Shown: positions 15,822 to 41,153, numbered from the stretch's first letter. The stretch: 64,000 bases of DNA from Lepidodermella squamata (GCA_047495785.1 JBLDXI010000048.1:186001-250000), one strand, 5' to 3'. Made by a program: numbers and translations. The notes: generated by a model from the sequence alone, not told the origin.

Positions 15822-18216
15822 ATGTCTAAGGATCAACCGGAACAGAACACTGGTCCCTCTTTGGATTCAGATAATCCCGAAGAAAGAATTGCTGCTCGCC
15901 GTGCGCGAATCAAACGACGCATTGAAGAAGCCAGGAGGTTAGTTGAAGTCACACTAATGCTTATTGCTCTATATTCTGAGGAATTTTTTACTCCTCAGGG
16001 CTGCCTTGGGCGAACTAATTGAAGAGAAGAAAGAGGAAATTGTCATTCGGCCTAGTGATACTCAGATTAATCTCAGTCGTCAACGCTTAGTGAAGCTCAC
16101 GACCGATGGCAATGAAATTATTACAAACATTCGCATTGCTGCCGATGCTCGTGAGTCGACTCGACGCGTTGAAGAGGATGAGCACCGCAGACAACGCGTT
16201 GATAAAATTGAGTCTGAACGAAAGTCTTGCAACGATAAAATGGCAGAGATTACCCGTAAATGGGAATCTGCTCTTCAGAAAGAGATTCCTGATGATCTGC
16301 GAAAAATGCTGCAACAGCAACAAATTTCCTGCGATTCTCTCATCGACGAGAAGAACAAGCTCATTTCTGACTTCCGAGCTGAGCTTACTGACTGCGATTT
16401 GACGTATGCAAGGGATCTTAAGCGATGGGCTCAAGATATTGATCTCTTGGTCGAGCGTATGGAAACTCAGTTCAGAACAGCAGCTCTAACCTACCGTCAG
16501 GAGTTGCTTCAAATCGAGCATGCTTTTGACGCAGAGCGCGCCGATATGTTGAATAAGCATGAAGCTGAGTGGAAATCTACGATCGATAAGAAGCGTCTTA
16601 TGGAAGAAGATTTCTTGAAGCAACGCGCAACTATGGTTGACGAATTCGATCAACAGCTGGACGTGATGCGGCGCCAGGATGCGGAAGATTATAATATCGT
16701 CAAGGCTAAGCTGGAAAGCGAGGTCCAACTTCTTGAGCAGCAACTGCAGCTCATGAAAGCGACCTACCAGCTGAATCAAGAAAAGCTCGAGTATAATATG
16801 CAAGTGCTCAAGAAGCGCGAGGAGGAAAATGTGGTAACGATCAATCTTCAGAAGCGAAAATTGACGAAATTACACGACACGCTGAATCGCTTACAGCAAA
16901 AACTAGAAAAGCAGGAGAAATCTTTCAAGGACGAAAATGAGACATTGACAGCTGACTATCAGCGCATCAGTGATTTATTACAGCAGTTAATGCACAAAGC
17001 CAATCAATTTGTCCAGGCCGATAATGAGAAATTCAAAGAGGTTTGGCTGATGAACGAAGAGGAATGTAAGTCGCTGGTGAAGCGGCTGATGGAGATGTCG
17101 CAAATCTTGTGTGAGCAGCAGCTCGGCCTGCCTTATCAACCTAAGGAGCTCAGCTTTTTGGACGCATTTGGCCGACCTGAGTTCTCTCAAGCCAGTTCTT
17201 CGAAGCAGCAAAGGTCTGCCAACGAAATCGTTAGATCGGTAATGCAAGATGCAAAAGAGGCGACGAATCGATTGCTTCCAACAGAAGAGGCAGCAGGTAA
17301 GGTAGTCCTGCGCCTCGGAGGTTTAGACGGCACGGAACAAGTTGAAGTAACATCGACTACTGTTAAACGCATTCTAGAACTCATATGCGACGAATCAGGC
17401 TTTTTGATTGAAGAGAAGCTGCAAAAGCTATTATCGCCTCTTGATAAGGACGATCGTAACTTGATCAAACTAGACGCTATTTTCCACGCCTTACGCATCG
17501 AAAACGAGGAAGACGTCGGAATCCTAGCGAAATATTTCATTCAAATGAAGCAGAAAAGTTTGAATGATCTTCTCGAAGGCGGAGAGCAAGCAGGCCTCGA
17601 AGCCGAACTACCTCAAGCTAAAGAAGTAGATGATGGATTTGAGGAAAGTTTCGACGCCGAACACGAACTCGAAGAGCAAAATGCGGAAGATAACGTCGAA
17701 CTCATCCACCCTAATGGTACGCTTCTAGCCATGCGAGGCTTCATCGATGAGTTCCAGCGGTATCGGGCGGCTACAGCTGCCGCGAGCGCTTCGAATCACA
17801 AGCAAAACACAGAATTCCGTCTGTCGCTGGACGAACATCCCTCGCGAGATCGAGCTCGGGATTCAGCCTTCTGGTCTCAATTTGGATCTTTCCCCGGTCA
17901 GAAGGATGAGCAAGTTTGGGACGCCCTTCTCGTGGCGTTTGATAAATATCAGTAAGCTTGACATCGCTGCATTAATTTCATTAGTGATTTGTTTCATTTT
18001 AGTTCTCAACTTGAATCTCGCTCGAATCTTATTCGCGAGACAGATTCCATGCGGCAGCAGAATAACGAGCTTCGAATTTTGCTCCATCAGTACTTGCAGG
18101 CTAAGGTGAATCAGGAGCTTGTCGTTCCTCCGGCGAAGGTCATGCAATTTGACGGCGCAACAGCGGCAGCCATCGGCGCACCCTCAAACACCATGCCTGC
18201 ACCCGGCCGACCTTGA
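15822..18216 (+). CDS. DRC1: Dynein regulatory complex subunit 1 (CCDC164)
   Basis: Exons 15822-15937, 15999-17951, 18003-18216. N-terminal GPSLDSDNPEERIAARRARI, central MKATYQLNQEKLEYN, LICDESGFLIE, C-terminal QQNNELRILLHQYLQAKVNQELVVPP. Confidence 0.95.
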
Positions 18217-21447: not shown

Positions 21448-21840
21448 ATGTCTCTGTACGTCATGCTGATCCTTGGCCTTTGCTTAGGCATGGCTGCTTG
21501 CGAGGTGAAGTGGTGGCATGGCTGCGACTATCACGGCAACGATATCGGCAACGCGCCATCGACAGCGGATCGGTGCGGTCCGACCTGTGAAGCTGATCCG
21601 AAATGCAGTCACTTCAGTTGGACAGACTACAACGGTGGTACTTGTTGGATGAAATCTGGCTTCCATGAAGGCATGCAGTCAACGCCCGTCGATCATTCTT
21701 TCGTTTGCGGTTACTTTACGGAACGGGCTGGTGCTGCTGCTGGCGAGAGCGAGGACGGGCAAGATGGGGAAGGTGAAGGCGAAGGCGAAGGTGATGCCGA
21801 TGCCGACGGCGAAGTCGATGCCTCAAGCAAAGAAAACTAG
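21448..21840 (+). CDS. Secreted single PAN/Apple-domain protein with acidic Gly/Glu/Asp tail
   Basis: Signal peptide, then GCDYHGNDI..C...C.....CSHFSW....GGTCWMKSG..VCG (6 Cys). TATA-like CTATTTAA at ~21353 and AATAAA at 21878. Confidence 0.88.
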   Translation: MSLYVMLILGLCLGMAACEVKWWHGCDYHGNDIGNAPSTADRCGPTCEADPKCSHFSWTDYNGGTCWMKSGFHEGMQSTPVDHSFVCGYFTERAGAAAGESEDGQDGEGEGEGEGDADADGEVDASSKEN

Positions 21841-25490: not shown

Positions 25491-28232
25491 TCACACTGCG
25501 TTGATTCTTTGGGCGGTTGGCACGCCGACTATGGTTCGATGCATGATCGGATTACGCAAAGGGGATAAGAAAACAGACAGGCCGACAGCGAGTGCATATA
25601 TCAAGCAGACAACTGCTACTACAAGAATTTGCGCATTCACGAACGGACTACTTTCAAGGAGAAAAACGATAGCTACCCCGCTGAGGAGAAGCGTAATCGC
25701 AATGATGATAGCCAACATCGCAGGTTTGAAAACGGCTCCATTGGCAACGTTTTCTCGCTTGATCAAATCCGCAGTAGCCATGGTTGCAACGAGACCGACT
25801 ACCAAAATTGCGACGTCGATTACTAACAAAGCTGCAATGAAATATATCTGATTGGTTGAAACACAAGAAATTCGACGGCTCTCCAAATAAGCATCGGAGT
25901 CGTAATCGTAAATTGGCGCTGTACCAAATGCATCTTGGTTCACCTCTCTCAAGGGTTCAGCTGCAAACCAGGCAGAAATTACGGCCAAATGAAGAGCAAA
26001 TGCGATTCCTGTCGATAGAAATACGTGCTTGTTTTTCGCGTCAGCTCTTATAATCATTTTTGGTACAACTTTCACTTTGTTACTTCCAACGCTCGCAGTG
26101 CGACCAACTCTTATAGAACCAGTCGATGCCCCTCGTTTCAATACAGGTTTTGAAGGAGCCTTGGGCACGGAGAGCATTTTTACCAGAGACAGTCTTTTGT
26201 GGACGATTGACATATTTGCGCTGATTATGAATCCTGTCAGACTTCCATGGATTAGGGGAAGTCCCAATCCGAGGAAAACAACCCGGAAGTAGCAAATTGC
26301 TGAGCTGCCTTGAGACACAAACAAAGCTGCAGCTGCATTGATGAGAACCAAGCCCAGAGAGACAATGAGTCGGTTATATTGCTTATCGATCAAAAAGACC
26401 TTTGCTGAAGCGATTACCTGCAATGATAGATAATAGTTGAATGATAGATAATAGTAATAATTTCTCCTCAGTTTTCATACATATTATGGGTTTATGGGGA
26501 AAATTATAGTGAGAGATACTGTCTTCGCGGTTCTCTACGAGAAACAAAAATTGTGGGTAGCCTCGTGGTAATTAGCTACGCCCACCGCCAGCTACAACAC
26601 TTCGTGAAACTTGAAGGTTTGAGATACTCTTGACAAATATGCGCTCTACTAATGATCCGATACGGGCATTAAACTAGAAAGGGAGATAAAAACCATAACT
26701 TGCACTTACAGTCATAATAGCAAAAGTGACGGCAAGTGCAGCGATGACTCCTGTTACCGATGTTGGCATATTTCCGAAATCTACCAGAAGCTTAGCTGAA
26801 TCGCGGGGAAGAACTTGAGGCAGTGCCAGGAACTGTTCCGAAACATATGAAGAGACATTGATTATATCTTCATTGACGCATGTCACTTGATGCGTGACTA
26901 CCAATCGAGAATCTCGAGGTGACCAATACGCCACTGACTGAGGTTCGAAATCATATTCCCCTCGGGATGAATATTTGAACTTCCCATAGCGTAAATTCCC
27001 AAAGTCCAACTTCTTTGCGCTGTTGTTGGCCATCATCATGACTTCATACGGACGGGTTTTATAGTCTCGTAGAGACATGTTTCTTTTCTCGAGAACTCTT
27101 TCCGTCTCATTCAGAATCATGATGGCTGTCAAGATACGATCATAGCAGAGGTGGCGAAAATCCGAGTCAGCAGTAACCACGCCGCCAGTGTAATTGCTGA
27201 ACAGAGCCTCAAACTCGGGTAGGGTGTGACCAAGTGCTGTTCGGCCTGTCATGGGGCGAAGAGCGTCCACAGGTGAGCCAATAAAGTAAGTCATCTTGAA
27301 TTGCTCCAGAATGACCGTCCGATTGCAACCAGGCAATATCTCAAACGGTAGGGTTGTGACGTCGATGAAGCTCAAAAACTGGAAGATGAATAGGTACCTC
27401 GGCCCGGTCATCCCGAACTTGTAGGCTTGGCAGAGGAATTTCAACCCAGCAGCTGCCTCTGCAGTTTCCATAGCGAATACTCGAATGTCTCTCGCTTTCA
27501 ATGGTGCTATGAATTCATCACTGAAATCTAGGCTTCCTTCGAACGCTTGAACCTCAAACCCATTTGCTTGAGCAATTTTGTAGAAAAGATTGGCTGTTTC
27601 GTAGTTGAACGAGTTGCCATTATTGAAAATGATGCCGAGCTTCCTGATCTTGGTCTGAGTTTTCAGGAAATACAGCCTAGCGAAAATGGGCAGCTCAGCT
27701 GGCGATCGAATTCGGTACATGTTGGGGTAGAGGCCACGGCGAGCCGTTTGGACGGGGGAAGTGCAGGATCCTGCGATCATGAGCATGTTCATGTAGCCAG
27801 CTGTCCCACCCCATGCTTTGCAGGCTGGGGAGAGGAAAGGTCCCATTGTCACCGGAGACGCATAGACATCAGTCATTGCTTCGGTTCGGCGAGCGAATTC
27901 GATTGCTTGGCGAACTGCCTGAGCACCGCCAGGTCCTGGAAGATAACTTAACTAAACGCTAAAAAATATAGAGGATGGTGCATACCTTCGTTGACAAAGT
28001 CTAGTTCGATGTGGTAGTCTGGTAGGATGTCGCTTCGCTTGTTCACAATATCGGCAACCATTTGCTGAGCAGCTTGGCACATTTTGTTGTCTCGCGGCTC
28101 GTAGCCAGTCATCATGAGGATTGACAGCATGGACAGGCGATGAGGCTTCCGTTGGAAGAGGTTATCTTGCTGCTGTTGGCTAAAAGCCAGCCTAGCACAG
28201 CTGAGAACCAAAATTACTGACCTTGCAAGCAT
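25491..28232 (-). CDS. GABA-B-like class C GPCR, copy 1 (signal peptide, Venus flytrap, 7TM)
   Basis: Exons 28232-27986, 27935-26710, 26417-25491. VNKRSDILPDYHIEL and YPNMYR VFT motifs; no cysteine-rich domain; seven TM helices with ICYFR (TM3), W..EPL (TM4) and the ECL2 Cys. Confidence 0.9.
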
Positions 28233-29845
28233 CTTGTTAGTTAATGTACAATGGAAAATTCTCGTGTACTGTGAAATGTCTAGATGAAATCTTTTGGTCA
28301 ATTTAGATTTTATAGCTGAGCCTGTTACGCAGACCCGTGTCACCGATTAGCCTGCCGTGTTGATCGCCCGATCCAGGCTAATCTGGGATCTCACTCTCGC
28401 TTGAATATTAAGTCTTGTACATGACGTCAATGCCTTTCCATGGAAATAACAAATGCGTCACAACCATGTTTTCCGTAGGTGCACCAGGTTATTATGATGA
28501 TGCTGTGAATTCTTTTGAAGTTTGCAGTAGCATACATCTATTTTGGTGGATAATAAGCGTGTGAGAGAGAAGATTGAATATCCACCTCTAAGACGAAACA
28601 TGCCGTGGAATAGCTGAGGTAATGTTTCTGAGAATTCATCACGATCCAAAGCTCTGTTGAAATTTCGATTTTGAAACGCCAACATGCCACAGACGTTCTG
28701 TTTCTAGTTCTAACAGAAATATAACAGAAATATCGAAGTGCGTGAGGTCGAATGTCCGAGACGAACAATACAGCAACTCGACATTCCTTTGATTTTCTTT
28801 CCCTCTGCCTTTCGATGACAGAGGACGGGTCAATCACTGCACATAAAAACAATAAATTTAAATTTCAAATCGTCGTGCCTTCATAATTGTCTTTTGAAAA
28901 AGACAATACTTGTCCAATTGAAATATACACGATACCTTATCATAAACTGGACAAATAGAGAAATGATTGGTAGAATCGTTAAATGAAAGTGATATTTGCA
29001 CTACGAACATTTATAATAGGAATTTCGACTGGCTGCCAAGGGTGGAAATTACACGCACACAATTGTCAAATCGGGATATATATCGATTAGGCATGATAAA
29101 TGAGGCATACACTCTGAGGAAGACTTGTAACTCAAACACATATTTAGAAAGCTCTGAAAGCCCGAACGTTCAAGTCTCAAGATGTGCACTTTCATCAACG
29201 CGAACCTAAATCAACGAATTTCAGAGGGCAATTTCTTTCGCGTTTCTCTCCTCCTTACCCCCTATTGTTGGATTCAAATTCAACTTCATCTCCCAATCGC
29301 GTGCTACGAATCGCAGATGTGAGCATGAATGTATGATGGTGTTTCTGGATTGGGTTTCTTATGCGTTTTTCGGATGAAATGAGCAGGGCTCAGCTCGAAG
29401 TCCATCTAACCACGCTAAGCAATATGTGGGCTAGGCATAATTGACCGTTTTCCATATCTTTCTTGTCATTTAATTATCAATTATTTCTTGTCATTCACTA
29501 TCTCTATTTTAGGGTACACATTGATTGTCACTGAAAAGATACCCAAAGATACGCCTTCAGACGAATAACCTCAATTTTTTAGATACAGCGCGTTGCTATT
29601 AAAGTAAACCTTGCCCTCCAATCACATAGTTAATTCACATCGCTAAGAAAGATTTCTTGGGCTTTCACCGTCATTTAAAATCTTATGAAAAAGCAAAAAT
29701 TGTTTACTGGACAAAAAATAAACCAAATAAAAAACCTTGAAAAACCTTGCAGCTATCATGAGTAGTCTTGACCCATCAAGGTCTTGCGTCTACAAAATGA
29801 TTGTCAATACCACAAAGCAAAAAGAATTGCGTTTTAAATCGCTGA

Positions 29846-32384
29846 TCAAGCGATATTTGAAGAAGATCGCCGAGCTGCGGCTGCTAGACGCATTGGTGGT
29901 ACAAACACAGCGGTTCCGATAGCAAACGAATATATCAGACAAAATGCAGCGATAGAAATGACAACGGTATTAGCACCAGTTTGAAGCACAAAAGCACAAG
30001 CGACGCCACAAACGAACAGCGAAACAGCGAGAAGAAGCCCGATCATCGCCGGTTTCACAATAAAGTCGTTCGCTACATTGAAACGCTTAATCAGCTGGCT
30101 AGTATGGCCCGTTGCTAGGAGCCCAGCCACCAGCAAGATGAGATCAATGAGTAAAATCGCCAAGATGAAATAGATCTGTCTAGGCGATTCACAGACAATT
30201 TTCCTCGTAGCGACATTAACATCCTGTATGGGATCGTAGATCGAGACTGCAGATCCAGGTTCTTGGGTGAACTCGCGCAATCTATCGAAAAAGAACCACG
30301 CTGCTAGTACGACTACGTGCAGCGCTAGAGAAATTCCAGTGACAATATTGACGAAAGAGCTGTTGACTTCAACATTGATTTTCAGCTTGGAAACAATGGC
30401 TCTTCGTTGCTGACCGTTGCTTGACGTTCGCGAGATTTTCCCTGCCTGTTGGTCAGATGGAACTGATGGGGTCTTGCCTACTGATATGCGAAAGAATCTC
30501 CCCTGCTGCATTTGGTCTGACTGGACTGATGGCGACTTCCCAAAGCTCTGGATCGACTGTATCGACCGCCTTTTTTTAGAAATTGATCGAGCGGCTCCAA
30601 ATATGAACCCTGTCAGGCTGCCGTGAACCAAGGAAATTCCGATCGCGAGAGAAGCGGCTCTAGCGTAGCATAATGCCGTGCTACCTTGGGAAACGAAAAG
30701 AGCCGCTGAAAAATCGATCAGAATCAAGCCAACCGCGACGAATAGCCGACTTGATTGCTTATCGTGAAGATTGACCTTGATCACAAGAATAACCTTAAGA
30801 AAAAAAAATATTAGATGCATGGTGAATATTAAAAGGGGATACACACCTTCAGAATAGCTAATATGCCAGATGAAACTGCGATTACTGCAGTTACCACGGT
30901 AGAAATAGTGCCCAAATTGATGACTGAAGCCGATGAGTCATTGGGCAAAGCTCGTGGTAGAGGCAAGAATTGCTCGGCGACGTATGATGTTATGTTGGTG
31001 ATATCATCGTCCACGCAAGTCACTTGATGGGTGACCACTAGGTGTGATACACTCTGCGACCAATAGGCCACGGATTGAGGCTCAAAGTCATATTCCGCCC
31101 TTGACGAGTATTTGAATCTTCCGTATCGTAGATTGCCGAAATCTAAGCGCCGTGCGCTTTCGTTAGCGACCATCATGACTTCATATGGCTTGGTCTTATA
31201 GTCTCGAAGGGACATGTTTTTTCTTCCTAGAACTCCCTCTGTCTCATTCAGAATCATGATGGCTGTCAAGATGCGATCGTAACAGAGGTGGCGAAAGTCC
31301 GAGTCAGCAGTAACCACGCCGCCAGTGTAATTGCTGAACAGAGCCTCAAACTCGGGTAGGGTGTGACCAAGTGCTGTTCGGCCTGTCATGGGGCGAAGAG
31401 CGTCCACAGGTGAGCCAATAAAGTAAGTCATCTTGAATTGCTCCAGAATGACCGTCCGATTGCAACCAGGCGATATCTCAAACGGTAGGGTTGTGACGTC
31501 GATGAAGCTCAAAAACTGGAAGATGAATAGGTACCTCGGCCCGGTCATCCCGAACTTGTAGGCTTGGCAGAGGAATTTCAACCCAGCAGCTGCCTCTGCA
31601 GTTTCCATAGCGAATACTCGAATGTCTCTCGCTTTCAATGGTGCTATGAATTCATCACTGAAATCTAGGCTTCCTTCGAACGCTTGAACCTCAAACCCAT
31701 TTGCTTGAGCAATTTTGTAGAAAAGATTGGCTGTTTCGTAGTTGAACGAGTTGCCATTATTGAAAATGATGCCGAGCTTCCTGATCTTGGTCTGAGTTTT
31801 CAGGAAATACAGCCTAGCGAAAATGGGCAGCTCAGCTGGCGATCGAATTCGGTACATGTTGGGGTAGAGGCCACGGCGAGCCGTTTGGACGGGGGAAGTG
31901 CAGGATCCTGCGATCATGAGCATGTTCATGTAGCCAGCTGTCCCACCCCATGCTTTGCAGGCTGGGGAGAGGAAAGGTCCCATTGTCACCGGAGACGCAT
32001 AGACATCAGTCATTGCTTCGGTTCGGCGAGCGAACTCGATTGCTTGGCGAACGGCCTGGGCTCCACCGGGTCCTTTTCAAACAAGAAACGATGAACAGAA
32101 GAATCGACAAAATTATTATACTCACCTTCGTTGACAAAGTCTAGTTCGATGTGGTAGTCTGGTAGGATGTCGCTTCGCTTGTTCACAATATCGGCAACCA
32201 TTTGCTGAGCAGCTTGGCACATTTTGTTGTCTCGCGGCTCGTATCCAGTCATCATTAGTATCGAAAGCATGGACAGACGATGAGGCTTCCGTTGGAAACT
32301 CGTTCCACTTTGCAGCTGGCCATTGACCTCGGCGATGAGGCTGAGTAAGGCCAGACCATATAGCGCTTGTGTTAGAAAAAACAT
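29846..32384 (-). CDS. GABA-B-like class C GPCR, copy 2
   Basis: Exons 32384-32126, 32072-30847, 30793-29846; same architecture and intron positions as copy 1. Confidence 0.9.
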
Positions 32385-32837
32385 TTTTGATATGAAAAAA
32401 TCGCAAATTCAAGTTTTCAAATATCGAAAAAGCGCACACCTTAAATAGCTGATAAAACGCAGCATTTGCGTCAGAGGTCTGGTCAAAATTAGCAGAGTGA
32501 GTTTCAGCACATATTTCTTGATGCATGTTGGTGCCTGAATACCCTGGTCGTTATAGTATTCAACAGTTTCTTCAGTTTAGAGCCCAAGCGAGTAAAATTA
32601 GCTCATCCATGCGGTGATGTTACTTGATTCGAAAATAACTTCGCGCGTGCGTCGGTGAGTTTACGTAAGACTGCGCGAAATATGCACCGAGATCAGCAAG
32701 CAATGACGTCAAATCAAGTTTTCAAAGTAGCTCGCCAACATTTTTCCACGTAACATCAACGCATTTGACAACGCAAACACGCCAAGTAACATGATATAGG
32801 CGAGTCCGGAGTGGTCGAGTTAGCATCTAGAAGTAAT

Positions 32838-32851
32838 GTTGCCTAGACAAC
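32838..32851. promoter_or_regulatory. RFX X-box candidate upstream of GPCR copy 2
   Basis: GTTGCCTAGACAAC within the palindrome ATGTTG..CAACAT, about 450 bp upstream of the ATG. Confidence 0.4.
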
Positions 32852-33097
32852 ATCATGGACATGGTAGTCGGGACATGGTAGCAATTTCAAAATATTCAAC
32901 CACAGTTGAAATGTCAGTTTATCTCCTTTTTGAATTTAGAATTGCATTATAATAAAATAATCCAATTCGATAAAATGATATTAATTCTACCTAAGTACTT
33001 ATTTTAGACAAAATGTTGTCGATAGTTCAATTATAGCATAAGTATTAGCTCGCTGCTATGAAGACATTTTACTTTGAAACCGGCGAAAATACCATTA

Positions 33098-33483
33098 CAG
33101 TGAAAGTTGTCTAAACCGGACTGGGGTCACGCAAGGCGGTTTAGACGAAGTCCGGATAATTTTATAGCGAATGAAGTCTGGACTGGGAAATATAAGGGGA
33201 ACAAAGTAATTTTTTTTTCAAGTTTTATGAACTTTAAAGTCATTCGAGTCATACCTTTCCACTTTTGAACTACATAGACCCTCGTCGCTAGATCCGGGAT
33301 GATGGGCCGATTGAAAATTCGCAAATTTTTCGAAGTGTCTCATGCCTTACAGGTGCCGTCATTTTCCATGCGCTATTGAGCCCGGTTTAGACAGTAAAAT
33401 TATAACGGAAACTCCACACTTTCGGATCGAGCCACCCGACAACGTCCGGTTTAGAGATAGTCCGGTTTGACAACTTTCACTTT
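33098..33483. mobile_element. MITE, Tc1/pogo-type
   Basis: Terminal inverted repeats TA-CAGTGAAAGTTGTCTAAACCGGACT and AGTCCGGTTTGACAACTTTCACT, with internal CCGGTTTAGA sub-repeats and no ORF. Confidence 0.8.
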
Positions 33484-34987
33484 GGCTCTTTCACGGCCGA
33501 ATTTTTTATCTCTGGAAGAATAAATATTTGACATCATTTCTAGTGGTTTTCGAAGGCCCTGATCACGATTTTGAAGCCTGCTTGCGTCTATCTATCACTG
33601 TTAAGACTTTTGCGGTGACAGCGGCAGAGACATTCGATTTTTCGAAATTGGCCCTCCAATATATACCGAGAAACGAATCAATAATTTTGTTTTCTAGACC
33701 TGGAGGCTGCCGTGATTATCACAAAAAATGCGGGAATAATCAACTTGCAAAGTGGCTAAATGGATAGTAATTAATAAATCTAAAATGAATAACAGAAACC
33801 TGTCAATTGTTTTGGAATGAATCCAGCAATATAATATATAATCTGTGATAATTTTTGTTTCACATTCTCTGGAAAATTTCAGCATAAGCTACCGTGGGAT
33901 TGTTTCGCGTTTTATCGAAAGCCTGTGTTAAAGACGAATTTCAAATAGTACAAAGACTGAGTATCAATTTTCTATGAAGACTATCAAGTTATCTTTCGAA
34001 TAAAGGGAATGAGTTATGATTGCCTTACCATAGGCGTCCTAAGAAATGATACTCCGCGTTCCCCAGGCATCATAATAAAGTTCAGCGAGCTGCGAATCGC
34101 TAAATTTAACTAATTTACGCCCATAGTCAATCGTCTAGGGTCTACGGCAGCTGCCTAATGACGGAGTGGTGACGCAAAAATCATGATCATTTACGCAAAC
34201 GTCTGTTGCGAGCAACGTCAGTGGACTGCTTAAAGTCGCTATATCCATAGCTGCTATGGGACTTCTTACGCAGGTACGCAGGTACCTGTCTTTTTTTGCT
34301 AGCGTTTAGTATTTCATGTCGAGGAGAATGGTAACATAGGTAATTAAATGAACGCTGAGAACACTCAAAATTTACCTGCTATTTATATGCAGCTGGTGCG
34401 AAGAATAATGAACGTGATTGGAGCACAACTTTTGAAGAGTGACACAGCAAGAAGCAAGTAAGGCCTCTTGGTTATTCGCTATACGATACAGCTGATGCGA
34501 TACGATTTCATCAGCTAAGCAGTTGAATGTTCATCTGTTCGATTGGTGCAAATTGAAAAATTGAAAAATTGAAAATTTGTAAATTTCAACTTTTCTACTT
34601 TTGGGTCTTTGACAGCTTTTAGAATGTTCAGCGAGTCGTGAACTCCTATTTACGATGGCTGAGCCAGACAGCTACAATAAGCTAAAGCTGTCAGGTGGAT
34701 ACAGCAACCATTCGCAACTTCATTGCACCCTTGTACCCCTTATTGTAGATATTTGATATTTTTAGCATTGATGGAAGTTAGTAAGAAGACATAAGTTATT
34801 AGCTATCAAATCGCAGATTGCAGGAAACCTTTGAGTTTTCAGTTTCAAGTTTCACCCTCGGATATTGTGCGCTGTACGCAAAATGTTTCACTTGCTGCTA
34901 CAAAGCGATACTTATAGACAGTTCCATTTAGGACTTTTTATTTTTAGATAAATGTTGAACACGGCTGAACCGGTAAGCACTTATGGA

Positions 34988-37456
34988 TCAGCTTGCAGTT
35001 TGATTTCGATGTTCAACTGATCCATTATCAGTTTCGGGTTTCAGCTTTCTAGCTGTAGCAGGAATAAAAACAGCGAATGAGTAAACTAAACAAATCGCCG
35101 AGATAAATGTTGTAACAGTATTCCCACGACTGCTGTTTTGAAGAATGAATACGATAGCAACGCCGCCGATGAAGAGCGACACAGCGACTATATTTGCAAC
35201 GAACATCGGCTTGATTTGATACACGTTATGGATTTGTTGCGATTTTACCAAGGGAGCAGTTGAGAAAGTGGCGAGTAGACCGATAAGTAGCATGGCCATG
35301 TCCACGACAATTAAAATCGTAACGTATATCGACTGATTATCTGAAATACAGTTGATGCTTCTAATTCCGAAGTACGCATCCTGCCTGAAGTCGTAGGCCA
35401 AAGCTAAGCGATCCAAGTCTTGCATTAATTCGGACAGAGTTTCAGTTAGAAACCAAGTAAGGATTATGATCAGATGAGTAGCTATCGAAATCCCAACTAC
35501 GAGACAGACAAACTTGCTGCTAATGTCGACTTTAATTTTGGATTTCGCTTCAACATTTTTCCGCTCAAGGTTGTGACTAGACGTTCTGTAGGCTGCGATA
35601 TGAGTTGATGGCCGAACTTGGATTAGTGGGTGCCTCTTAGCTGTAAGCGATCGTCTCGCGCTAAAAATGAACCCAACAAGGGTTCCATGGGCTATGGCGA
35701 GTCCAATCGCAAGGAAGAAGACTCGAGCGTAGCAAATCGACGAGCTACCTTGTGACACGAACAAAACTGCTGCTAGGTCGACATACACCAATGAGACGCA
35801 GATGAGAATGCGGCTCGGGCTTTTGTGATTCGCGTGGGCTCTAATTGCCAAAATTACCTTGGGTTAGAATTTTGCAATATTAAATAAGCGAACTTCAGAC
35901 GGAAAAGCGGTCATACCTTTGCGAGGGCAAGAATAAGTGCTAGAACTGATATCGCAGCTGTTGATGAGATCGGAATCGTATCAAACTGAATGATAAGTTT
36001 TGCCGCGTCTTGAGGCAATGGGTAGGGTAATTGGAGGAACTCAATGGCTGCGTATGAAGAAATGTTCGTGATGTTATCGCTGATACATGAAACCTGATGC
36101 GTGACAAGTAATCTTGAGGCATCAGCAGACCAAAACGCAACCGATTGAGGTTCGAAATCGTACTCAACCCTAGACGAGTATTTGAATTTTCCATAGCGTA
36201 GATTGCCGAAATCTAAGTGCCTTGCACTTTCGTTAGCGACCATCATAACCTCATACGGCTTTGTCTTGTAATCTCGTAGAGACATGTTTCTACTCTGTAG
36301 ATTCGTTTCAGTCTGATTGAGGATCATTATAGCGGTAAGAATGCGATCGTAGCAGAGATGACGGAAGTCTGAATCTGGAGATACAACGCCACCAGTGTAA
36401 TTGCTAAACAAAGCCTCAAACTCGGGCGAAGTGTGACCAAGAGCAGTTAGACCGGTCATAGGCCTAAGAGAGTCCAGAGGTGATCCGATGAAGTAGGTCA
36501 TCTTGAACTGCTCCAGTACAACAGTCCGGTTACATCCAGCAGAAATATTGAAAGGTAGCGTTGTTATATCGATAAAGCTCAACAGCTGGAAAATGAACAG
36601 GTACCTTGGTCCTGTCATTCCAAGCTTGTAGGCTTGACATAAAAATTTCAAACCCGCAGCTGCTTCAGCAGTTTCCATTGTAAACACGCGAATATCTCTT
36701 GCTTTCAACGGCGCCATGAATTCATCGCTGAAATCAAGACTTCCTTCGAACGCTTGTATTTCGAACCCGTTAGCCTGGGCGATTTTATAGAAAAGATTGG
36801 CTGTCTCATAATTGTAAGAATTCCCATTGTTGAAAATGATACCCAGCTTCCTGATCTTGGTCTGAGACTTTAGGAAATATAGCCTTGCAAATATCGGAAG
36901 CTCAGCTGGCGATCGAATTCGGTACATGTTGGGGTAGAGGCCACGGCGAGCCGTTTGGACGGGGGAAGTGCAGGATCCTGCGATCATGAGCATGTTCATG
37001 TATCCAGCTGTCCCACCCCATGCTTTGCAAGCCGGGGAGAGGAAAGGTCCCATTGTTACCGGAGACGCATAGACGTCAGTCATTGCTTCGGTTCGGCGAG
37101 CGAATTCGATTGCTTGGCGAACTGCTTGGGCTCCACCGGGTCCTTTCAAAAGAGAGTATAGTTGGCTTGGACAATTTATAGAAATGTATAATTTCCTCAC
37201 CTTCGTTGACGAAATCTAGTTCGATATGGTAGTCGGGCAGTATGTCGCTTCTATTGTTCACGATATCGGCAACCATTTGCTGAGCAGCCTGACACATTTT
37301 GTTGTCTCGCGGCTCGTAGCCAGTCATCATCAGTATTGATAGCATGGCTAAGTGATGACGCTTTACTTGATATGTCTCCTTATCAAGCCGGTCCATTTGG
37401 GATATACCCATTTCAATTGATAGCATCATGAAGACTGCCACTGCTCTGGAATTCAT
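34988..37456 (-). CDS. GABA-B-like class C GPCR, copy 3
   Basis: Exons 37456-37201, 37142-35917, 35857-34988; same architecture. Confidence 0.9.
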
Positions 37457-38181
37457 TTTACAAGGTTCGCGGTTTGGTTGATATCGAAAGTGAGCTTTTA
37501 GGTTGTAATCCTATGCAATCAAAAGCTGGGATATTTTACATTTTATTTATCTTTATTTGTTTATCGAGTTAGGGTTCCAGGAAAAAGAGGCAGTAAAATA
37601 TCATTGCGTTGGCGCAGTAAAATACAATTTTCTCCCTCCAGTTAAATATCACTTCCGATTTTTTCAATGTAATTTCGAAAACTAGCTTATGCCTAGTGAA
37701 GCCAGGATCGGTTAAATGCGCTTGAGAAATAATTTGAACTTGGGTGGTAAATTTGTTTCATATGCTTAGAGAATTCAATGCATGCTCATCGTGCGAAGTC
37801 CGCCGTATAAAAGCTCTTCGAAACAGGAAAATAGTTCCGAAAAAGTCGACTGCTTTAAGCACATTTGTTAATGCGGGGTTGACCTAGCTGGGCGATACAG
37901 CAGAAACTTTAACCTTATCCATACGACAGGTCTCAAATATCCTAGTAAAATCCATTATTCCCCATTAGAAATTCACATTTCATGCTTTTAGGCATTACTG
38001 CTGGGGAAGCTTTGTGGGAAACGGAAGGTATGTTTTTTTATATGCTGGAAAGCCTTGAAGGAATTGTTGAGTGTCTAATTTCAAAGAAATCTGCAGTGTT
38101 GAATTCATTTAATAAATTCCTATAAATCCTAAATAAAAGTTCGAAATGTGCATTTTGATTGCGCCCTGCAAGTAGAAGTAG

Positions 38182-38224
38182 CTTCTCACCGGATCATTTA
38201 TATTACAAATGATCCGGTGAGAAG
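38182..38224. repeat. Perfect 18-bp inverted repeat with 7-nt loop
   Basis: CTTCTCACCGGATCATTT-ATATTAC-AAATGATCCGGTGAGAAG. Confidence 0.9.
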
Positions 38225-38508
38225 AAACTATATGAAGCCAGCGGGACCTTTAGAATAAGAGTTATTATTTCCAAGAGTTCTTTAAATTAATCTAATGCAA
38301 CATTATTTTCTCAAAAGTTATTTATCGTCCGAATCCTTCAAGAGGAGATTCATTTGAACATTATTTGCACAACATAAATCATAAACTTGAATTTGTTTGC
38401 CGATCGGGAAAAGCCATGGAAATCAGGTGAAGATTCAGTCGTTTCTCGACGATTGTTGGGCAGGGGATACCTTACGCAGGCTTATAGTAATGTGATTCTC
38501 TAAATGAT

Positions 38509-41153
38509 CTAAATGATACTTGCCGAGCAAGCCTGGCGCAAAGGCTGGGCGAAAATCGCTGATCCAACCGTTAGCGAATAAATAAGACAGAAAATCGCAA
38601 CTGCGACAACCTGCGCATTGACATGAACACTGTTTGCTAGTAAGAATACAATAGCGATCCCACTGAGGAGTAGCGAAATAGCAATGATCACTGCTATTAT
38701 CACAGGCTTCAAATCTCTGACATTAACGACGTTATAACGTTTGATCAAATCTCCAATTGAAAGGGCTGCGAAGAGTCCAACGATCAAAATAGAAACATCG
38801 ATCAACACTAACACAGCTGTGAATTGAAGCTGGTTGGCTGAGTAGCAGAAAATGCGTCTTGTCCCTAGATGGGCATCCAAATTAGAGTCGTAGATCTGGA
38901 TCACTCCTTGCGGATCTTCTGTAACCTCCTTCAAAGGTTCTGAAGCGAACCAAACAATGACGACGATAAAATGAGCGATTAAGGAAGATGCTGTTGCGAT
39001 GCAAACAGCTTTGTCGCTGACTTCTGCCACGATGGTAGAGTCTATTAGCTTCGAGCTAGTTTGCCTACGCGGCTGCTTGAATTTTAGAGTCTGACGAGCT
39101 GTTTCGCCAGTTGAGAGCCGAGATTCGCCGACTGCTGATATGGATGGGCCGTGCGATAGTCGCTTGAGGATTATAGAACGACGGGCACTCAACGTAAAGC
39201 TAGCGAGACTACCGTGTGTGAAAGCAAGGCCCAATGTGAGGAAAACTATGCGGAAGTAGCAGATCGCTGAGCTGCCTTGTGATACAAACAAAGCAGCGGC
39301 TGCATCGATGGAAATTAACCCCACGGTTAGTAGAATTCGAACAATCCATTTCTTGGCAGCTTTTACCAGACAGTATACCTGCAACGATTCAAAATTTAGT
39401 CAATCATCAACTTATTTAGTCAATCATCAATGGGTTCGCCCTGCAAAGTGGAATCTTATTGGGGATCAAGAACTTGAGAAAACCTCAGACTTGAGAACAT
39501 TTTAGACAGGTTAGACCGAACCCATTTACAAACTACTTTGCAGAATCGCACATAACTATGTCTCGATTGTGAGTTCTTAGTCGATCAGAATTACTAGTTA
39601 AGTCATAAACTATAACTCACCTTAGCAGAGGCTAAAATACTCGAGAATGCTGCAATGATGCCAGTTGCCAACCTGGAAATAGCGCCGAGATCGATTAGAA
39701 TCAGAGCCGAATCGTTTGGCAGAGCTTGTGGCAAGGGGGTGAATTCCTCTGTCACGTAAGAGGATATATTTGTTATTAAATCACTGACACAGGACACAGG
39801 TGATTTGATGGGTAACGGATAGTTTCGAGGTTTGAGGCGACCAGTAAGTCACTGACTGCGGCTCATAGTCATATTCGACTCGAGATGAGTACTTGAATAT
39901 TCCGTAGCGTAGATTGCTGAAATCTAAGCATCGAGCGCTGTCATTAGCTACCAGCATAACCTCGTGAGGATTAGTTTTGTAGTCACGAAGAGACATGTTG
40001 CGGTAAGAGAGTACTCGCTCCGTTTCATTGAGAATCATGATGGCGGTTAAGATGCGGTCGTAGCAGAGGTGGCGGAAGTCCGAGTCCGGAGTGACCACGC
40101 CGCCTGTGTAGTGACTGAAAAGGGCTTCAAACTCAGGCAGGGTGTGACCAAGAGCCGTTCTTCCACTTATCGGTCTAAGAGCATCCAAAGGTGACCCAAT
40201 GAAGTAGGTCATCTTGAACTGCTCCAGTACAACAGTCCGGTTACACCCAACAGAAATTTTGAAAGGTAGTGTTGTCACATCGATGAAGCTCAACAGCTGG
40301 AAAATGAACAGGTACCTTGGTCCTGTCATTCCAAGCTTGTAGGCTTGACACAGAAATTTCAAACCCGCAGCTGCTTCAGCAGTTTCCATTGTAAACACGC
40401 GAATATCTCTTGCTTTCAACGGCGCCATGAATTCATCGCTGAAATCCAAGCTTCCTTCGAATGCCTGCACCTCGAACCCATTTGCTTGGGCGATTTCGTA
40501 GAAAAGCTTAGCTGTATCGTAGTTGAACGAGTTGCCATTGTTGAAAATGATCCCGAGCTTCCTGATCTTGGTCTGAGTCTTTAGGAAGTACAGTCTTGCA
40601 AATATCGGAAGCTCAGCTGGCGATCGAATTCGATACATGTTCGGATAGAGACCACGGCGAGCCGTTTGGACTGGCGAAGTGCATGAACCAGCGATCATGA
40701 GCATGTTTATGTAACCAGCTGTCCCACCCCATGCTTTGCAGGCCGGGGAGAGGAAAGGTCCCATTGTCACCGGAGACGCATAGAAATCAGTCAGTGCTTC
40801 GTTTCGGCGAGCGAACTCGATTGCTTGGCGAACGGCTTGGGCTCCACCGGGTCCTTTTGAAACAAGAAACGATGAATAGAAGAATCGAAACAATTATTAT
40901 ACTCACCTTCGTTGACAAAGTCTAGTTCGATATGGTAATCGGGCAGTATGTCGCTCCTCTTGTTCACAATATCAGCAACCATTTGCTGAGCAGCTTGGCA
41001 CATTTTGTTGTCTCGCGGCTCGTAGCCAGTCATCATCAGTATCGACAGCATGGTCAAACGGTTTTTCTTCGTTCTGCCATCCTGGAGTTCATCTGCTGAC
41101 AGAGCAGATGAAGAGTTCAGCAATATCAAAAAGAGTAAGTTTAAAAACTTCAT
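38509..41153 (-). pseudogene. GABA-B-like class C GPCR, copy 4, frameshifted at the end of the Venus flytrap
   Basis: Exons 41153-40907, 40853-39621, 39378-38509. A 7-bp tandem duplication (39786-39799) turns HQITCVSDL into HQITCVLCQ*. The remaining stalk and 7TM frames are intact. Confidence 0.8.

Follow-up and report, generated by a model that had tools for sequence, protein, structure and literature searches.

The window, i.e., the whole stretch of 64,000 nucleotides analysed here, contains between positions 25,491 and 41,153 a group of neighboring receptor genes that are nearly identical in the first three quarters of the ligand-binding domain and strongly diverged in the membrane-signalling half. 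Which process produces such a pattern, and what does it mean for the encoded receptors? A preliminary description, made from the sequence alone, had proposed one constant flytrap (VFT) module that is kept by selection plus gene conversion and joined to divergent 7TM modules, in reversal of the usual class C design. We favor, with a probability of roughly 0.8, an old tandem array of GABA-B-like genes whose 5' block evolves in concert, whose flytrap core is under strong purifying selection and whose 3' part evolves independently; the intact genes would share one sensor.

Gene models and the second copy of the locus

Based on ORFs and splice sites, we find four tandem genes (g1 to g4) on the minus strand of 25491-41153, each with three exons and GT-AG introns:

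25491..28232 (-): g1; exons 27986-28232, 26710-27935 and 25491-26417; about 799 codons (ORFs, splice sites, Pfam, hydropathy)
29846..32384 (-): g2; exons 32126-32384, 30847-32072 and 29846-30793; ICL2 of 73 aa (ORFs, splice sites, Pfam, hydropathy)
34988..37456 (-): g3; exons 37201-37456, 35917-37142 and 34988-35857 (ORFs, splice sites, Pfam)
38509..41153 (-): g4; exons 40907-41153, 39621-40853 and 38509-39378; disrupted (ORFs, splice sites, alignment of nine copies)

This recovers the four-gene class C GPCR array described before, with Pfam placing ANF_receptor in exon 2 and 7tm_3 in exon 3. Three exon-2 ORFs (g1, g3, g4) were scanned for ANF_receptor, and all three exceed its Pfam cut-off; 7tm_3 lies above its cut-off of 33.5 bits for g3 (34.2) and g4 (37.9) and below it for g1 (24.7) and g2 (29.2). 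Gene g1 is composed, in this order, of a signal peptide, a GABA-B-type VFT, a stalk, a 7TM region with a basic ICL2 of 61 aa and a 20-aa tail. By hydropathy, exon 3 contains six hydrophobic segments, and a further one closes exon 2; the ICL2s comprise 38-73 aa and are basic in all four genes (net +5 to +14). The signal peptides are unlike between g1 to g4. Protein searches and fold work were done on single exons, and the computations omitted the codon that intron 1 interrupts.

A fifth copy (k5) is located on contig C34, unlinked to the array. The 7TM of g3 is sister to that of k5 (67% aa identity), and the array 7TMs are mutual closest relatives within the genome. The locus itself is also found a second time: C10:2245000-2305000 aligns collinearly with the window, the identity being about 96%. 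Both locus copies contain four genes in equal order and spacing but show different mosaics. Between C10 and the window, partner genes reach 97-100% identity in stalk, 7TM and intron 2, compared to only 80-95% in the VFT core. When probing C48 against C10, position 50 kb is 100% identical, position 450 kb matches in repeats only and position 900 kb has no C10 partner; the doubling appears to be confined to the first ~250 kb of C48. The C10 copy is probably the other haplotype, the alternative being a very recent segmental duplicate, and the gene-conversion argument given below holds for both. Unseen at first reading were k5 and the second locus copy, a 7-bp duplication in g4 and the boundary of high identity within the flytrap.

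The preliminary description counted four genes; of these, only three are intact, since g4 is frameshifted:

39794..39800 (-): 7-bp tandem duplication (CCTGTGT twice) in exon 2 of g4 (alignment of the nine copies)

The resulting frameshift leads to a TGA stop at the border of VFT and stalk. The C10 counterpart of g4 (h4) is without this duplication and instead misses one T in mid-VFT, i.e., the frame is broken in both locus copies. The allelic 7TM comparison of g4 and h4 shows 10 non-synonymous versus 9 synonymous differences. Gene g4 is probably a young pseudogene; if expressed, its product would be a truncated, secreted VFT-only protein.

Receptor type

Pfam, a family profile and fold matches agree in that g1 to g4 encode GABA-B-type class C GPCRs, which bears out the earlier class C assignment. 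The family profile matches GABA-B1 (GB1, E=1e-36) and GABA-B2 (GB2, E=7e-24) with alignments that run through VFT and 7TM, and GPR156 weakly. The predicted model of g1 exon 2 (pLDDT 92.4) has the GB2 and GB1 flytraps as closest folds (TM-scores 0.70-0.77), with mGlu flytraps among the best; within the fold alignment, the array flytrap is 14-18% identical to GB1/GB2. C547 and C663 of the 7TM region are invariant in the family alignment and are read as the TM3-ECL2 pair. No NCD3G match, i.e., no cysteine-rich domain, was obtained in the Pfam scan of the array ORFs.

Single-sequence searches reach less far. A word-index protein search gave no match at E<=1e-10 for the g1 flytrap exon and none at E<=1e-5 for an intronless family member of 772 aa, and a single-sequence PDB search gave no match, such that GABA-B was reached by the family profile only. 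An exhaustive representative search returned 89 matches, the best of which is 35% identical and stems from ENA metagenome contigs.

To compare the binding pocket, we take the GABA contacts of GB1 to be W65, S130, G151, S153, H170, Y250, W278 and E349 (GB1b numbering, which is said to go back to Geng et al. 2013). The HMM alignment shows a constant numbering offset of 21 for all eight residues, which checks this numbering. At these positions, the array carries E, K, S, T, R, A, S and F, i.e., by alignment-based mapping seven of the eight contacts are replaced, with S153 to T as the sole conservative one. The GABA pocket is thus predicted not to be conserved in the array. In GB1-GB2, a C-terminal coiled coil mediates pairing and masks ER retention; such a coiled coil is absent from g1 to g4 because their tails after TM7 comprise only 9-20 aa.

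Identity along the genes

From MLSILMMTG through the end of exon 1, the four proteins show 98-100% aa identity, followed by 92-100% within the first 250 codons of exon 2, i.e., to about the YDRILTAIMILN motif (VFT core overall 90-100%). Identity is 80-86% in the last 90 flytrap codons, 47-60% in stalk and TM1 and 38-49% in the 7TM exon, in agreement with the divergent signal peptides, stalks and 7TMs described before. The intron 1 sequences of g2 and g4 are 94% identical; intron 2, in contrast, is unalignable between paralogues. The homogenised zones are as follows:

27183..28157 (-): homogenised zone of g1; intron 1 flanked by the 3' two-thirds of exon 1 and the opening ~250 codons of exon 2 (sliding identity, nearest-neighbour scan, sliding pS)
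31320-32297, 36390-37372 and 40101-41078 (-): equivalent homogenised zones of g2, g3 and g4, respectively

Thus, the idea of one constant flytrap module holds for the near-identical core but not for the module as a whole, since the homogenised zone stops within the folded VFT, at about codon 250 of exon 2.

Genes g1 and g2 share a tract of 737 bp, with a longest perfect run of 562 bp:

27161..27897 (-): g1 copy of the tract; one mismatch to g2, at 27335
31298..32034 (-): g2 copy of the tract

The near-identity with one substitution had already been noticed. The true g1-g2 register is 4137 bases; the coordinates first given were therefore off by one base. Within the VFT core, g3 and g4 differ from the other copies by 90-95 synonymous versus 18-22 non-synonymous differences, so their largely synonymous divergence was correctly described.

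Gene conversion between the array genes

Sliding pS between paralogues climbs from 0.19 to 0.8 along exon 2. That is, dS is clearly non-uniform, while uniform dN and dS along the gene had been named beforehand as what would refute the proposal. Over codons 1-175, allelic and paralogue pS are equal (0.18-0.51); afterwards, allelic pS drops to 0.04-0.12. A scan of the VFT core in 120-bp windows often places a paralogue other than the partner gene closest (one mismatch for h1-h3, zero for g1-g2), and trees from the two halves of exon 2 conflict with strong support. A GENECONV-style permutation test (2000 permutations) gives p<0.0005 for 16 array pairs. The same test for conversion tracts with the unlinked k5 finds 0 of 8 pairs significant (all p>0.2). 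Interlocus gene conversion in the array is directly supported, in that mosaic tracts, a homogenised intron 1 and a paralogue identity above the allelic one bear out what had been proposed. Since the two locus copies bear different mosaics, copying between linked genes is still under way. A signature of GC-biased conversion appears to be absent or weak, i.e., GC3 is not clearly raised (0.49-0.60 in the core, 0.44-0.49 in the 7TM), and unconverted family members differ similarly slightly.

Could purifying selection without any DNA exchange lead to the same picture? The stronger constraint on the flytrap compared to the 7TM throughout the family would fit. Nevertheless, protein-level selection explains neither 737 bp with one mismatch nor a common intron 1, and also leaves the four-fold rise of synonymous divergence along one exon and the larger distance of partner genes compared to paralogues unexplained. 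These four observations refute the selection-only reading, to which we assign next to no probability.

Another candidate is a single partial duplication or exon shuffle, in which 7TM genes that existed before and had already diverged received the flytrap segment in one copying event, exchange having ceased thereafter. We consider it very improbable. It would yield a low 5' dS and a saturated 3' dS, but the tract ages are unequal, with a VFT-core dS of 0.035 for g1/g2, 0.47 for g3/g4 and about 0.9 for the remaining pairs. Furthermore, short tracts vary by pair and between the locus copies, so exchange events post-date the split of the copies. The array 7TMs, being each other's closest relatives in the genome, were hence not recruited from elsewhere.

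Finally, repeats that were collapsed, an assembly path that switched between paralogues or the mis-assignment of reads in polishing might mimic conversion. The double presence of the locus and the shortness of the tracts are compatible with such an artefact, as is the fact that read support on the stretch comes from contigs and not from raw long reads. On the other hand, both locus copies show four genes in matching order and spacing with each its own mosaic, and switching paths between paralogues would lead to the loss or doubling of unique 7TM and intergenic DNA, neither of which is seen. Most paralogue tracts differ by 5-20%, which is too much for misplaced reads. Moreover, independently built contigs from a public run, which are short and were compared over 26400-32399 (6,000 letters), match 29345-30918 and 31298-31632 with zero differences. 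An artefact is therefore highly improbable as well.

Selection and family context

We observe an omega of about 0.04 for the VFT core and about 0.39 for the 7TM. VFT-core dN is 0.03-0.04 versus a dS of 0.85-0.95, and likewise for k5; the selection on the flytrap that had been proposed is thus also seen against an unlinked copy without conversion tracts. The 7TM exons of the array show saturation at synonymous sites and a dN of 0.44-0.60; for g3 versus k5, the 7TM dN is 0.208 and the dS 0.538. In the control family pair L019/L020, dS is even along the gene (1.01, 0.91, 0.79), and omega is 0.05 for the VFT and 0.26 for the 7TM.

At least 112 matches to the family are found in this genome. In 120 of 120 pairs among 16 other members, conservation is higher in the VFT than in the 7TM. 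Regarding the "reverse design", the stronger conservation of the flytrap is confirmed, but it is family-wide and not specific to the array. Judged from these sequence comparisons, the distinctive feature of the array is its extra homogenisation beyond the family-wide flytrap constraint.

We think it somewhat more probable that this homogenisation is a by-product of the flytrap constraint than that it is itself selected: the constraint would keep the DNA similar enough for recombination. An adaptive modular design as put forward in the preliminary description, in which homogenisation is selected, one ligand site and dimer interface are kept, and heterodimers with different 7TM/ICL2 outputs form a combinatorial code, seems unlikely. 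It would agree with core identities of 92-100% here versus 61-81% in family pairs with 43-50% 7TM identity, and with an omega of 0.04 at the low end of the family. Class C receptors such as GABA-B and mGlu are obligate dimers via lobe 1, and this dimer surface falls into the homogenised zone. However, the boundary of the zone lies inside a fold and not at a module border, conversion continues in g4 regardless of its broken state in both locus copies, and the unlinked k5 shows equal protein conservation without detectable conversion. We are similarly doubtful about a selected system of one sensor with several outputs, in which conversion is maintained, co-expressed subunits would form all pairwise heterodimers and the divergent 7TM/ICL2 parts would route one cue, possibly with g4-like copies as secreted decoys.

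Discussion

In the concerted-evolution scenario that we favor, the tandem array of four genes and the dispersed fifth copy on C34 go back to ancient duplications. A block of ~975 bp, which starts in mid exon 1, includes intron 1 and reaches to around codon 250 of exon 2, evolves in concert, with linked genes repeatedly exchanging short tracts of about 60-550 bp and very strong purifying selection (omega about 0.04) acting on the encoded flytrap core. The remainder of each gene downstream of this core, from the last quarter of the flytrap via stalk and 7TM (including the long, basic ICL2) to the tail, evolves independently, the 7TM under weak constraint (omega about 0.4), while g4 is probably decaying.

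For the intact genes, we infer practically one ligand-binding cleft and lobe-1 dimer surface, combined with three different TM/intracellular modules, such that one and the same cue, other than GABA, is probably sensed by the intact receptors. Differences between them would lie in coupling, regulation or expression site, and by analogy to other class C receptors they should work as dimers. The array illustrates how a receptor family can be split lengthwise into a ligand-binding half, which recombination and selection keep as a shared sequence pool across loci, and a signalling half that diverges freely. The family of more than 100 GABA-B-like receptors in this animal is unlikely to diversify via its ligand pocket, and a sensible search is thus for few ligands and many outputs and not for many ligands. 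In addition, flytrap-based trees and orthology calls will mislead for these genes, such that the 7TM exon is needed instead.

GABA-B is an obligate heterodimer in which one subunit binds the ligand and the other couples to the G protein. The array shares with GB1/GB2 the composition of VFT, short stalk and class C 7TM without a cysteine-rich domain as well as the TM3/ECL2 cysteines. It differs by its low flytrap identity, the replaced pocket positions, the missing coiled coil, a basic, Ser/Thr-rich ICL2 insert of 38-73 aa and the size of its family. In V2R/OlfC/T1R-type families, the flytrap is diversified, the 7TM is kept and a cysteine-rich domain is present. While the family of the array is also a large, tandemly arrayed and lineage-specific class C family, here the flytrap shows an omega of 0.04-0.05 and the 7TM of 0.26-0.39, and no cysteine-rich domain is found.

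A large private expansion of GABA-B-like receptors with variable binding pocket was reported in 2017 (bioRxiv 10.1101/120998), whose authors doubt that GABA is the ligand of every such receptor. Compared to that expansion, the present family is much larger, the nearest outside proteins of the array being only 35% identical, and domain-restricted concerted evolution as in the array is not described there.

Regional gene conversion is known from clustered protocadherin arrays (Yu et al. 2007, PMC1852091; Noonan et al. 2004, as cited therein). There as here, conversion homogenises one coding part of tandem receptor paralogues while the divergent remainder carries gene identity. A rise of GC3 is reported for protocadherins (PMC1852091) but is not clear in the array. 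Furthermore, protocadherins have a homogenised membrane-proximal ectodomain and a diverse recognition end, whereas the array combines a homogenised recognition domain with a divergent transmembrane signalling half. The polarity is thus opposite to both textbook class C chemoreceptor families and protocadherin clusters. We regard the array as a clear new case of an evolutionary process that is already known, rather than as a novel kind of system.

Gene Structure and Receptor Identity

The window holds the following genes and open frames.

15964-17955, plus strand: open frame of 663 aa containing an NYD-SP28 (sperm tail) domain, unrelated to the array
21448-21840, plus strand: small open frame with a PAN_4 domain, unrelated to the array
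25491-41153, minus strand: array of four genes (g1-g4), three exons each, GT-AG introns

Within g1-g4, intron 1 measures 50-58 bp and intron 2 53-292 bp. Each gene has a signal peptide of its own, encoded by exon 1 together with the first strand and helix of the Venus flytrap (VFT), i.e., the ligand-binding domain; exon 2 provides the remainder of the VFT, a short stalk and TM1, and exon 3 TM2-TM7 with a tail of just 9-20 aa. In all copies, exon 3 also carries a basic, Ser/Thr-rich ICL2 insert (38-73 aa, net charge +5 to +14; 26028-26210 in g1). The insert varies in length and sequence, and an alignment of 16 family members shows little conservation at this position. It occupies the part of class C receptors that touches G proteins.

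The preliminary description assigned the array to the class C receptors; domain, profile and fold matches agree and place it with the GABA-B receptors. The Pfam domains are ANF_receptor for exon 2 and 7tm_3 for exon 3. A PDB search with a single sequence gave no match; a family profile, built from 16 intronless members of the same genome, matched GABA-B1 (E=1e-36) and GABA-B2 (E=7e-24) across both domains and GPR156 weakly. For the AlphaFold model of the g1 exon-2 VFT (pLDDT 92.4), the best solved folds are the VFTs of GB2 and GB1 (TM-scores 0.70-0.77). According to the HMM alignment, 7/8 GABA-contact residues of GB1 are replaced in the array. These eight residues, which we take to be those listed by Geng et al. 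2013, all fall at one constant alignment offset, which checks the numbering. Furthermore, the array receptors lack the coiled-coil tail, while GB1 and GB2 lack the ICL2 insert. Judged by sequence, the array receptors are GABA-B-like in fold and not in ligand or pairing device.

Locus Copies and Gene Integrity

The genome assembly (121 Mb, 151 contigs) contains at least 112 matches to the array VFT. One of its contigs (C10) holds the same four genes (h1-h4, the partners of g1-g4) in a block of more than 55 kb that is collinear with the window at ~96% identity. On a larger scale, the end of the contig carrying the window (C48:1-250000) is doubled in the assembly as C10:2.24-2.50 Mb, the two copies being 96% identical near the array and 100% identical at C48:50001-52000. 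For C48:900 kb, no partner was found on C10. The C10 block looks like the retained second haplotype of this C48 end, with a homozygous stretch; the conversion argument would hold just as well for a segmental duplicate of very recent origin. Since the C48 end is present twice, family counts from this assembly include some doubled loci. Elsewhere on the same contig (C48:450001-452000, locus L040), we observed a ~790-bp element with more than 20 copies on many contigs (95-99% identity) and a ~435-bp element, bounded by short inverted ends, in many copies (88-96% identity), both of which look like young mobile-element families.

A fifth subfamily member, k5, is unlinked (C34:171249-174159, inside loci L034/L039), intact and of the same three-exon structure. 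Its sister is g3, and the 7TM regions of the two are 67% identical in protein. Its VFT core, i.e., the first ~250 codons of exon 2, is 90-95% identical to every array member, yet without conversion tracts.

Not all four genes of the array are intact: the frame of gene 4 is broken in both assembled locus copies, by different lesions. In g4, a 7-bp tandem duplication (39794-39800) results in a stop at the VFT/stalk border, which would leave an open frame of signal peptide and VFT alone. Its partner h4 (about C10:2267470) is without this duplication and has lost one T mid-VFT. The 7TM regions of g4 and h4 differ at 10 non-synonymous and 9 synonymous sites, those of g2 and h2 at 3 and 18, respectively.

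Identity Gradient and Gene Conversion

Protein identity among g1-g4 declines steadily along the gene.

Protein identity among g1-g4 by gene part
Exon 1, conserved part: 98-100%
Exon 2, codons 1-250: 92-100%
VFT, final 90 codons: 80-86%
Stalk and TM1: 47-60%
7TM exon: 38-49%

The near-identical VFT start and the diverged 7TM of the preliminary description are confirmed. The near-perfect match of g1 and g2 also stands, with a single base difference between 27161-27897 and 31298-32034; only its coordinates had been one base out of register, which leaves the finding unaffected. The homogenised zone does not coincide with the VFT module as had been assumed, since it begins within exon 1 and leaves out the last ~90 residues of the VFT fold. 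Its limit looks like a DNA-level limit rather than a domain border.

Partners are 97-100% identical in flanks, intron 2, stalk and 7TM, but merely 80-95% in the VFT core. For 120-bp core windows, the closest sequence is often another paralogue (0 mismatches for g1-g2, 1 each for h1-h3 and g3-h4), while downstream of ~27140 it is the partner in every case. Intron 1, which lies within the homogenised zone, shows 94% identity between g2 and g4; intron 2 and the promoters are not alignable among g1-g4. Sliding-window and GENECONV-type analyses bear out the conversion suggested earlier. Based on 562 variable sites, a GENECONV-style permutation identified runs of 17-143 matching sites for 16 within-array pairs (p<0.0005), and 0/8 pairs with the unlinked k5 were significant. 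Synonymous divergence is non-uniform: the mean pS between paralogues climbs from 0.19 where exon 2 begins via ~0.5 midway to 0.8 (saturation) at its end. Allelic pS matches paralogue pS over codons 1-175 (0.18-0.51) and drops to 0.04-0.12 thereafter, such that the four loci act as one shared sequence pool across the first VFT half. Maximum-likelihood trees of the two exon-2 halves disagree, i.e., in the core tree g1 and g2 cluster with each other rather than with their partners and k5 is separated from g3, while for the exon-2 remainder all partner pairs are recovered (96-100% support) and k5 groups with g3. Gene conversion has occurred among these genes, and recently.

Identical tracts could in principle also stem from assembly collapse or path switching. 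Over 29345-30918 and 31298-31632, the contigs of a public run show zero differences from the window; they do not reach across the repeats, and their depths are not usable as copy number. The main counter-argument is that two independently assembled locus copies keep the same gene order with different mosaics.

Selection and Family-Wide Conservation

The VFT is held by selection as well as conversion, as the preliminary description had it. Within the core, dN is 0.03-0.04 and dS 0.85-0.95 (omega ~0.04), with the same values against k5, which is without conversion tracts. Summed over the partner comparisons, exon 1 and core show ~195 synonymous and 25 non-synonymous differences. The 7TM is loosely constrained compared to the VFT core (g3 vs. 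k5: dN 0.208, dS 0.538, omega 0.39).

A conserved VFT joined to divergent 7TMs is indeed present, but is not a design peculiar to the array. Among 16 other family members, the VFT is more conserved than the 7TM in 120/120 pairs (median identity ratio 2.07), and in a close pair of members (L019/L020) dS is uniform from one gene part to the next (1.01, 0.91, 0.79), with omega of 0.05 in the VFT and 0.26 in the 7TM. Thus, a conserved sensor with a fast 7TM is a trait of the whole family. What distinguishes the array is the dS discontinuity and an excessively similar core: family pairs with 43-50% identical 7TMs have 61-81% identical VFT cores, compared to 92-100% in the array. Recruitment of the 7TMs from elsewhere is ruled out, since their closest relatives in the genome are each other (41-49%), followed by sequences at 30-32%.

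Proposed Explanation and Comparison with Known Systems

The 5' block evolves in concert, by short-tract interlocus conversion among linked copies atop strong purifying selection, and the 3' half diverges freely. The three intact genes would present a single ligand site and a single lobe-1 surface on three different transmembrane/ICL2 modules. Being class C, the receptors presumably act as dimers, and the intact ones may couple differently, be regulated differently or be expressed in different places. We favour, at roughly 60:40, homogenisation as a by-product of VFT constraint, which would keep the DNA alike enough for recombination, over homogenisation that is itself selected. We lean this way because the zone ends inside the fold, the decaying gene still participates, and k5 is conserved without conversion.

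No close family relatives were found among 1.84 billion representative proteins, the best match being 35% identical and from metagenome contigs. The closest outside VFT relatives (31-35% identical) are located on ENA metagenome contigs (L043, 525-4180; L044, 3262-10976); a Cys-loop channel gene adjoins on one contig, and GT92 and GT10 (fucosyltransferase) genes are near on the other. Our literature search found no report of regional conversion in a class C VFT. Both ingredients have known counterparts, i.e., lineage-specific GABA-B-type expansions with variable pockets (10.1101/120998) and, in protocadherin clusters, tandem receptor genes of which one part is kept alike by regional conversion (PMC1852091).
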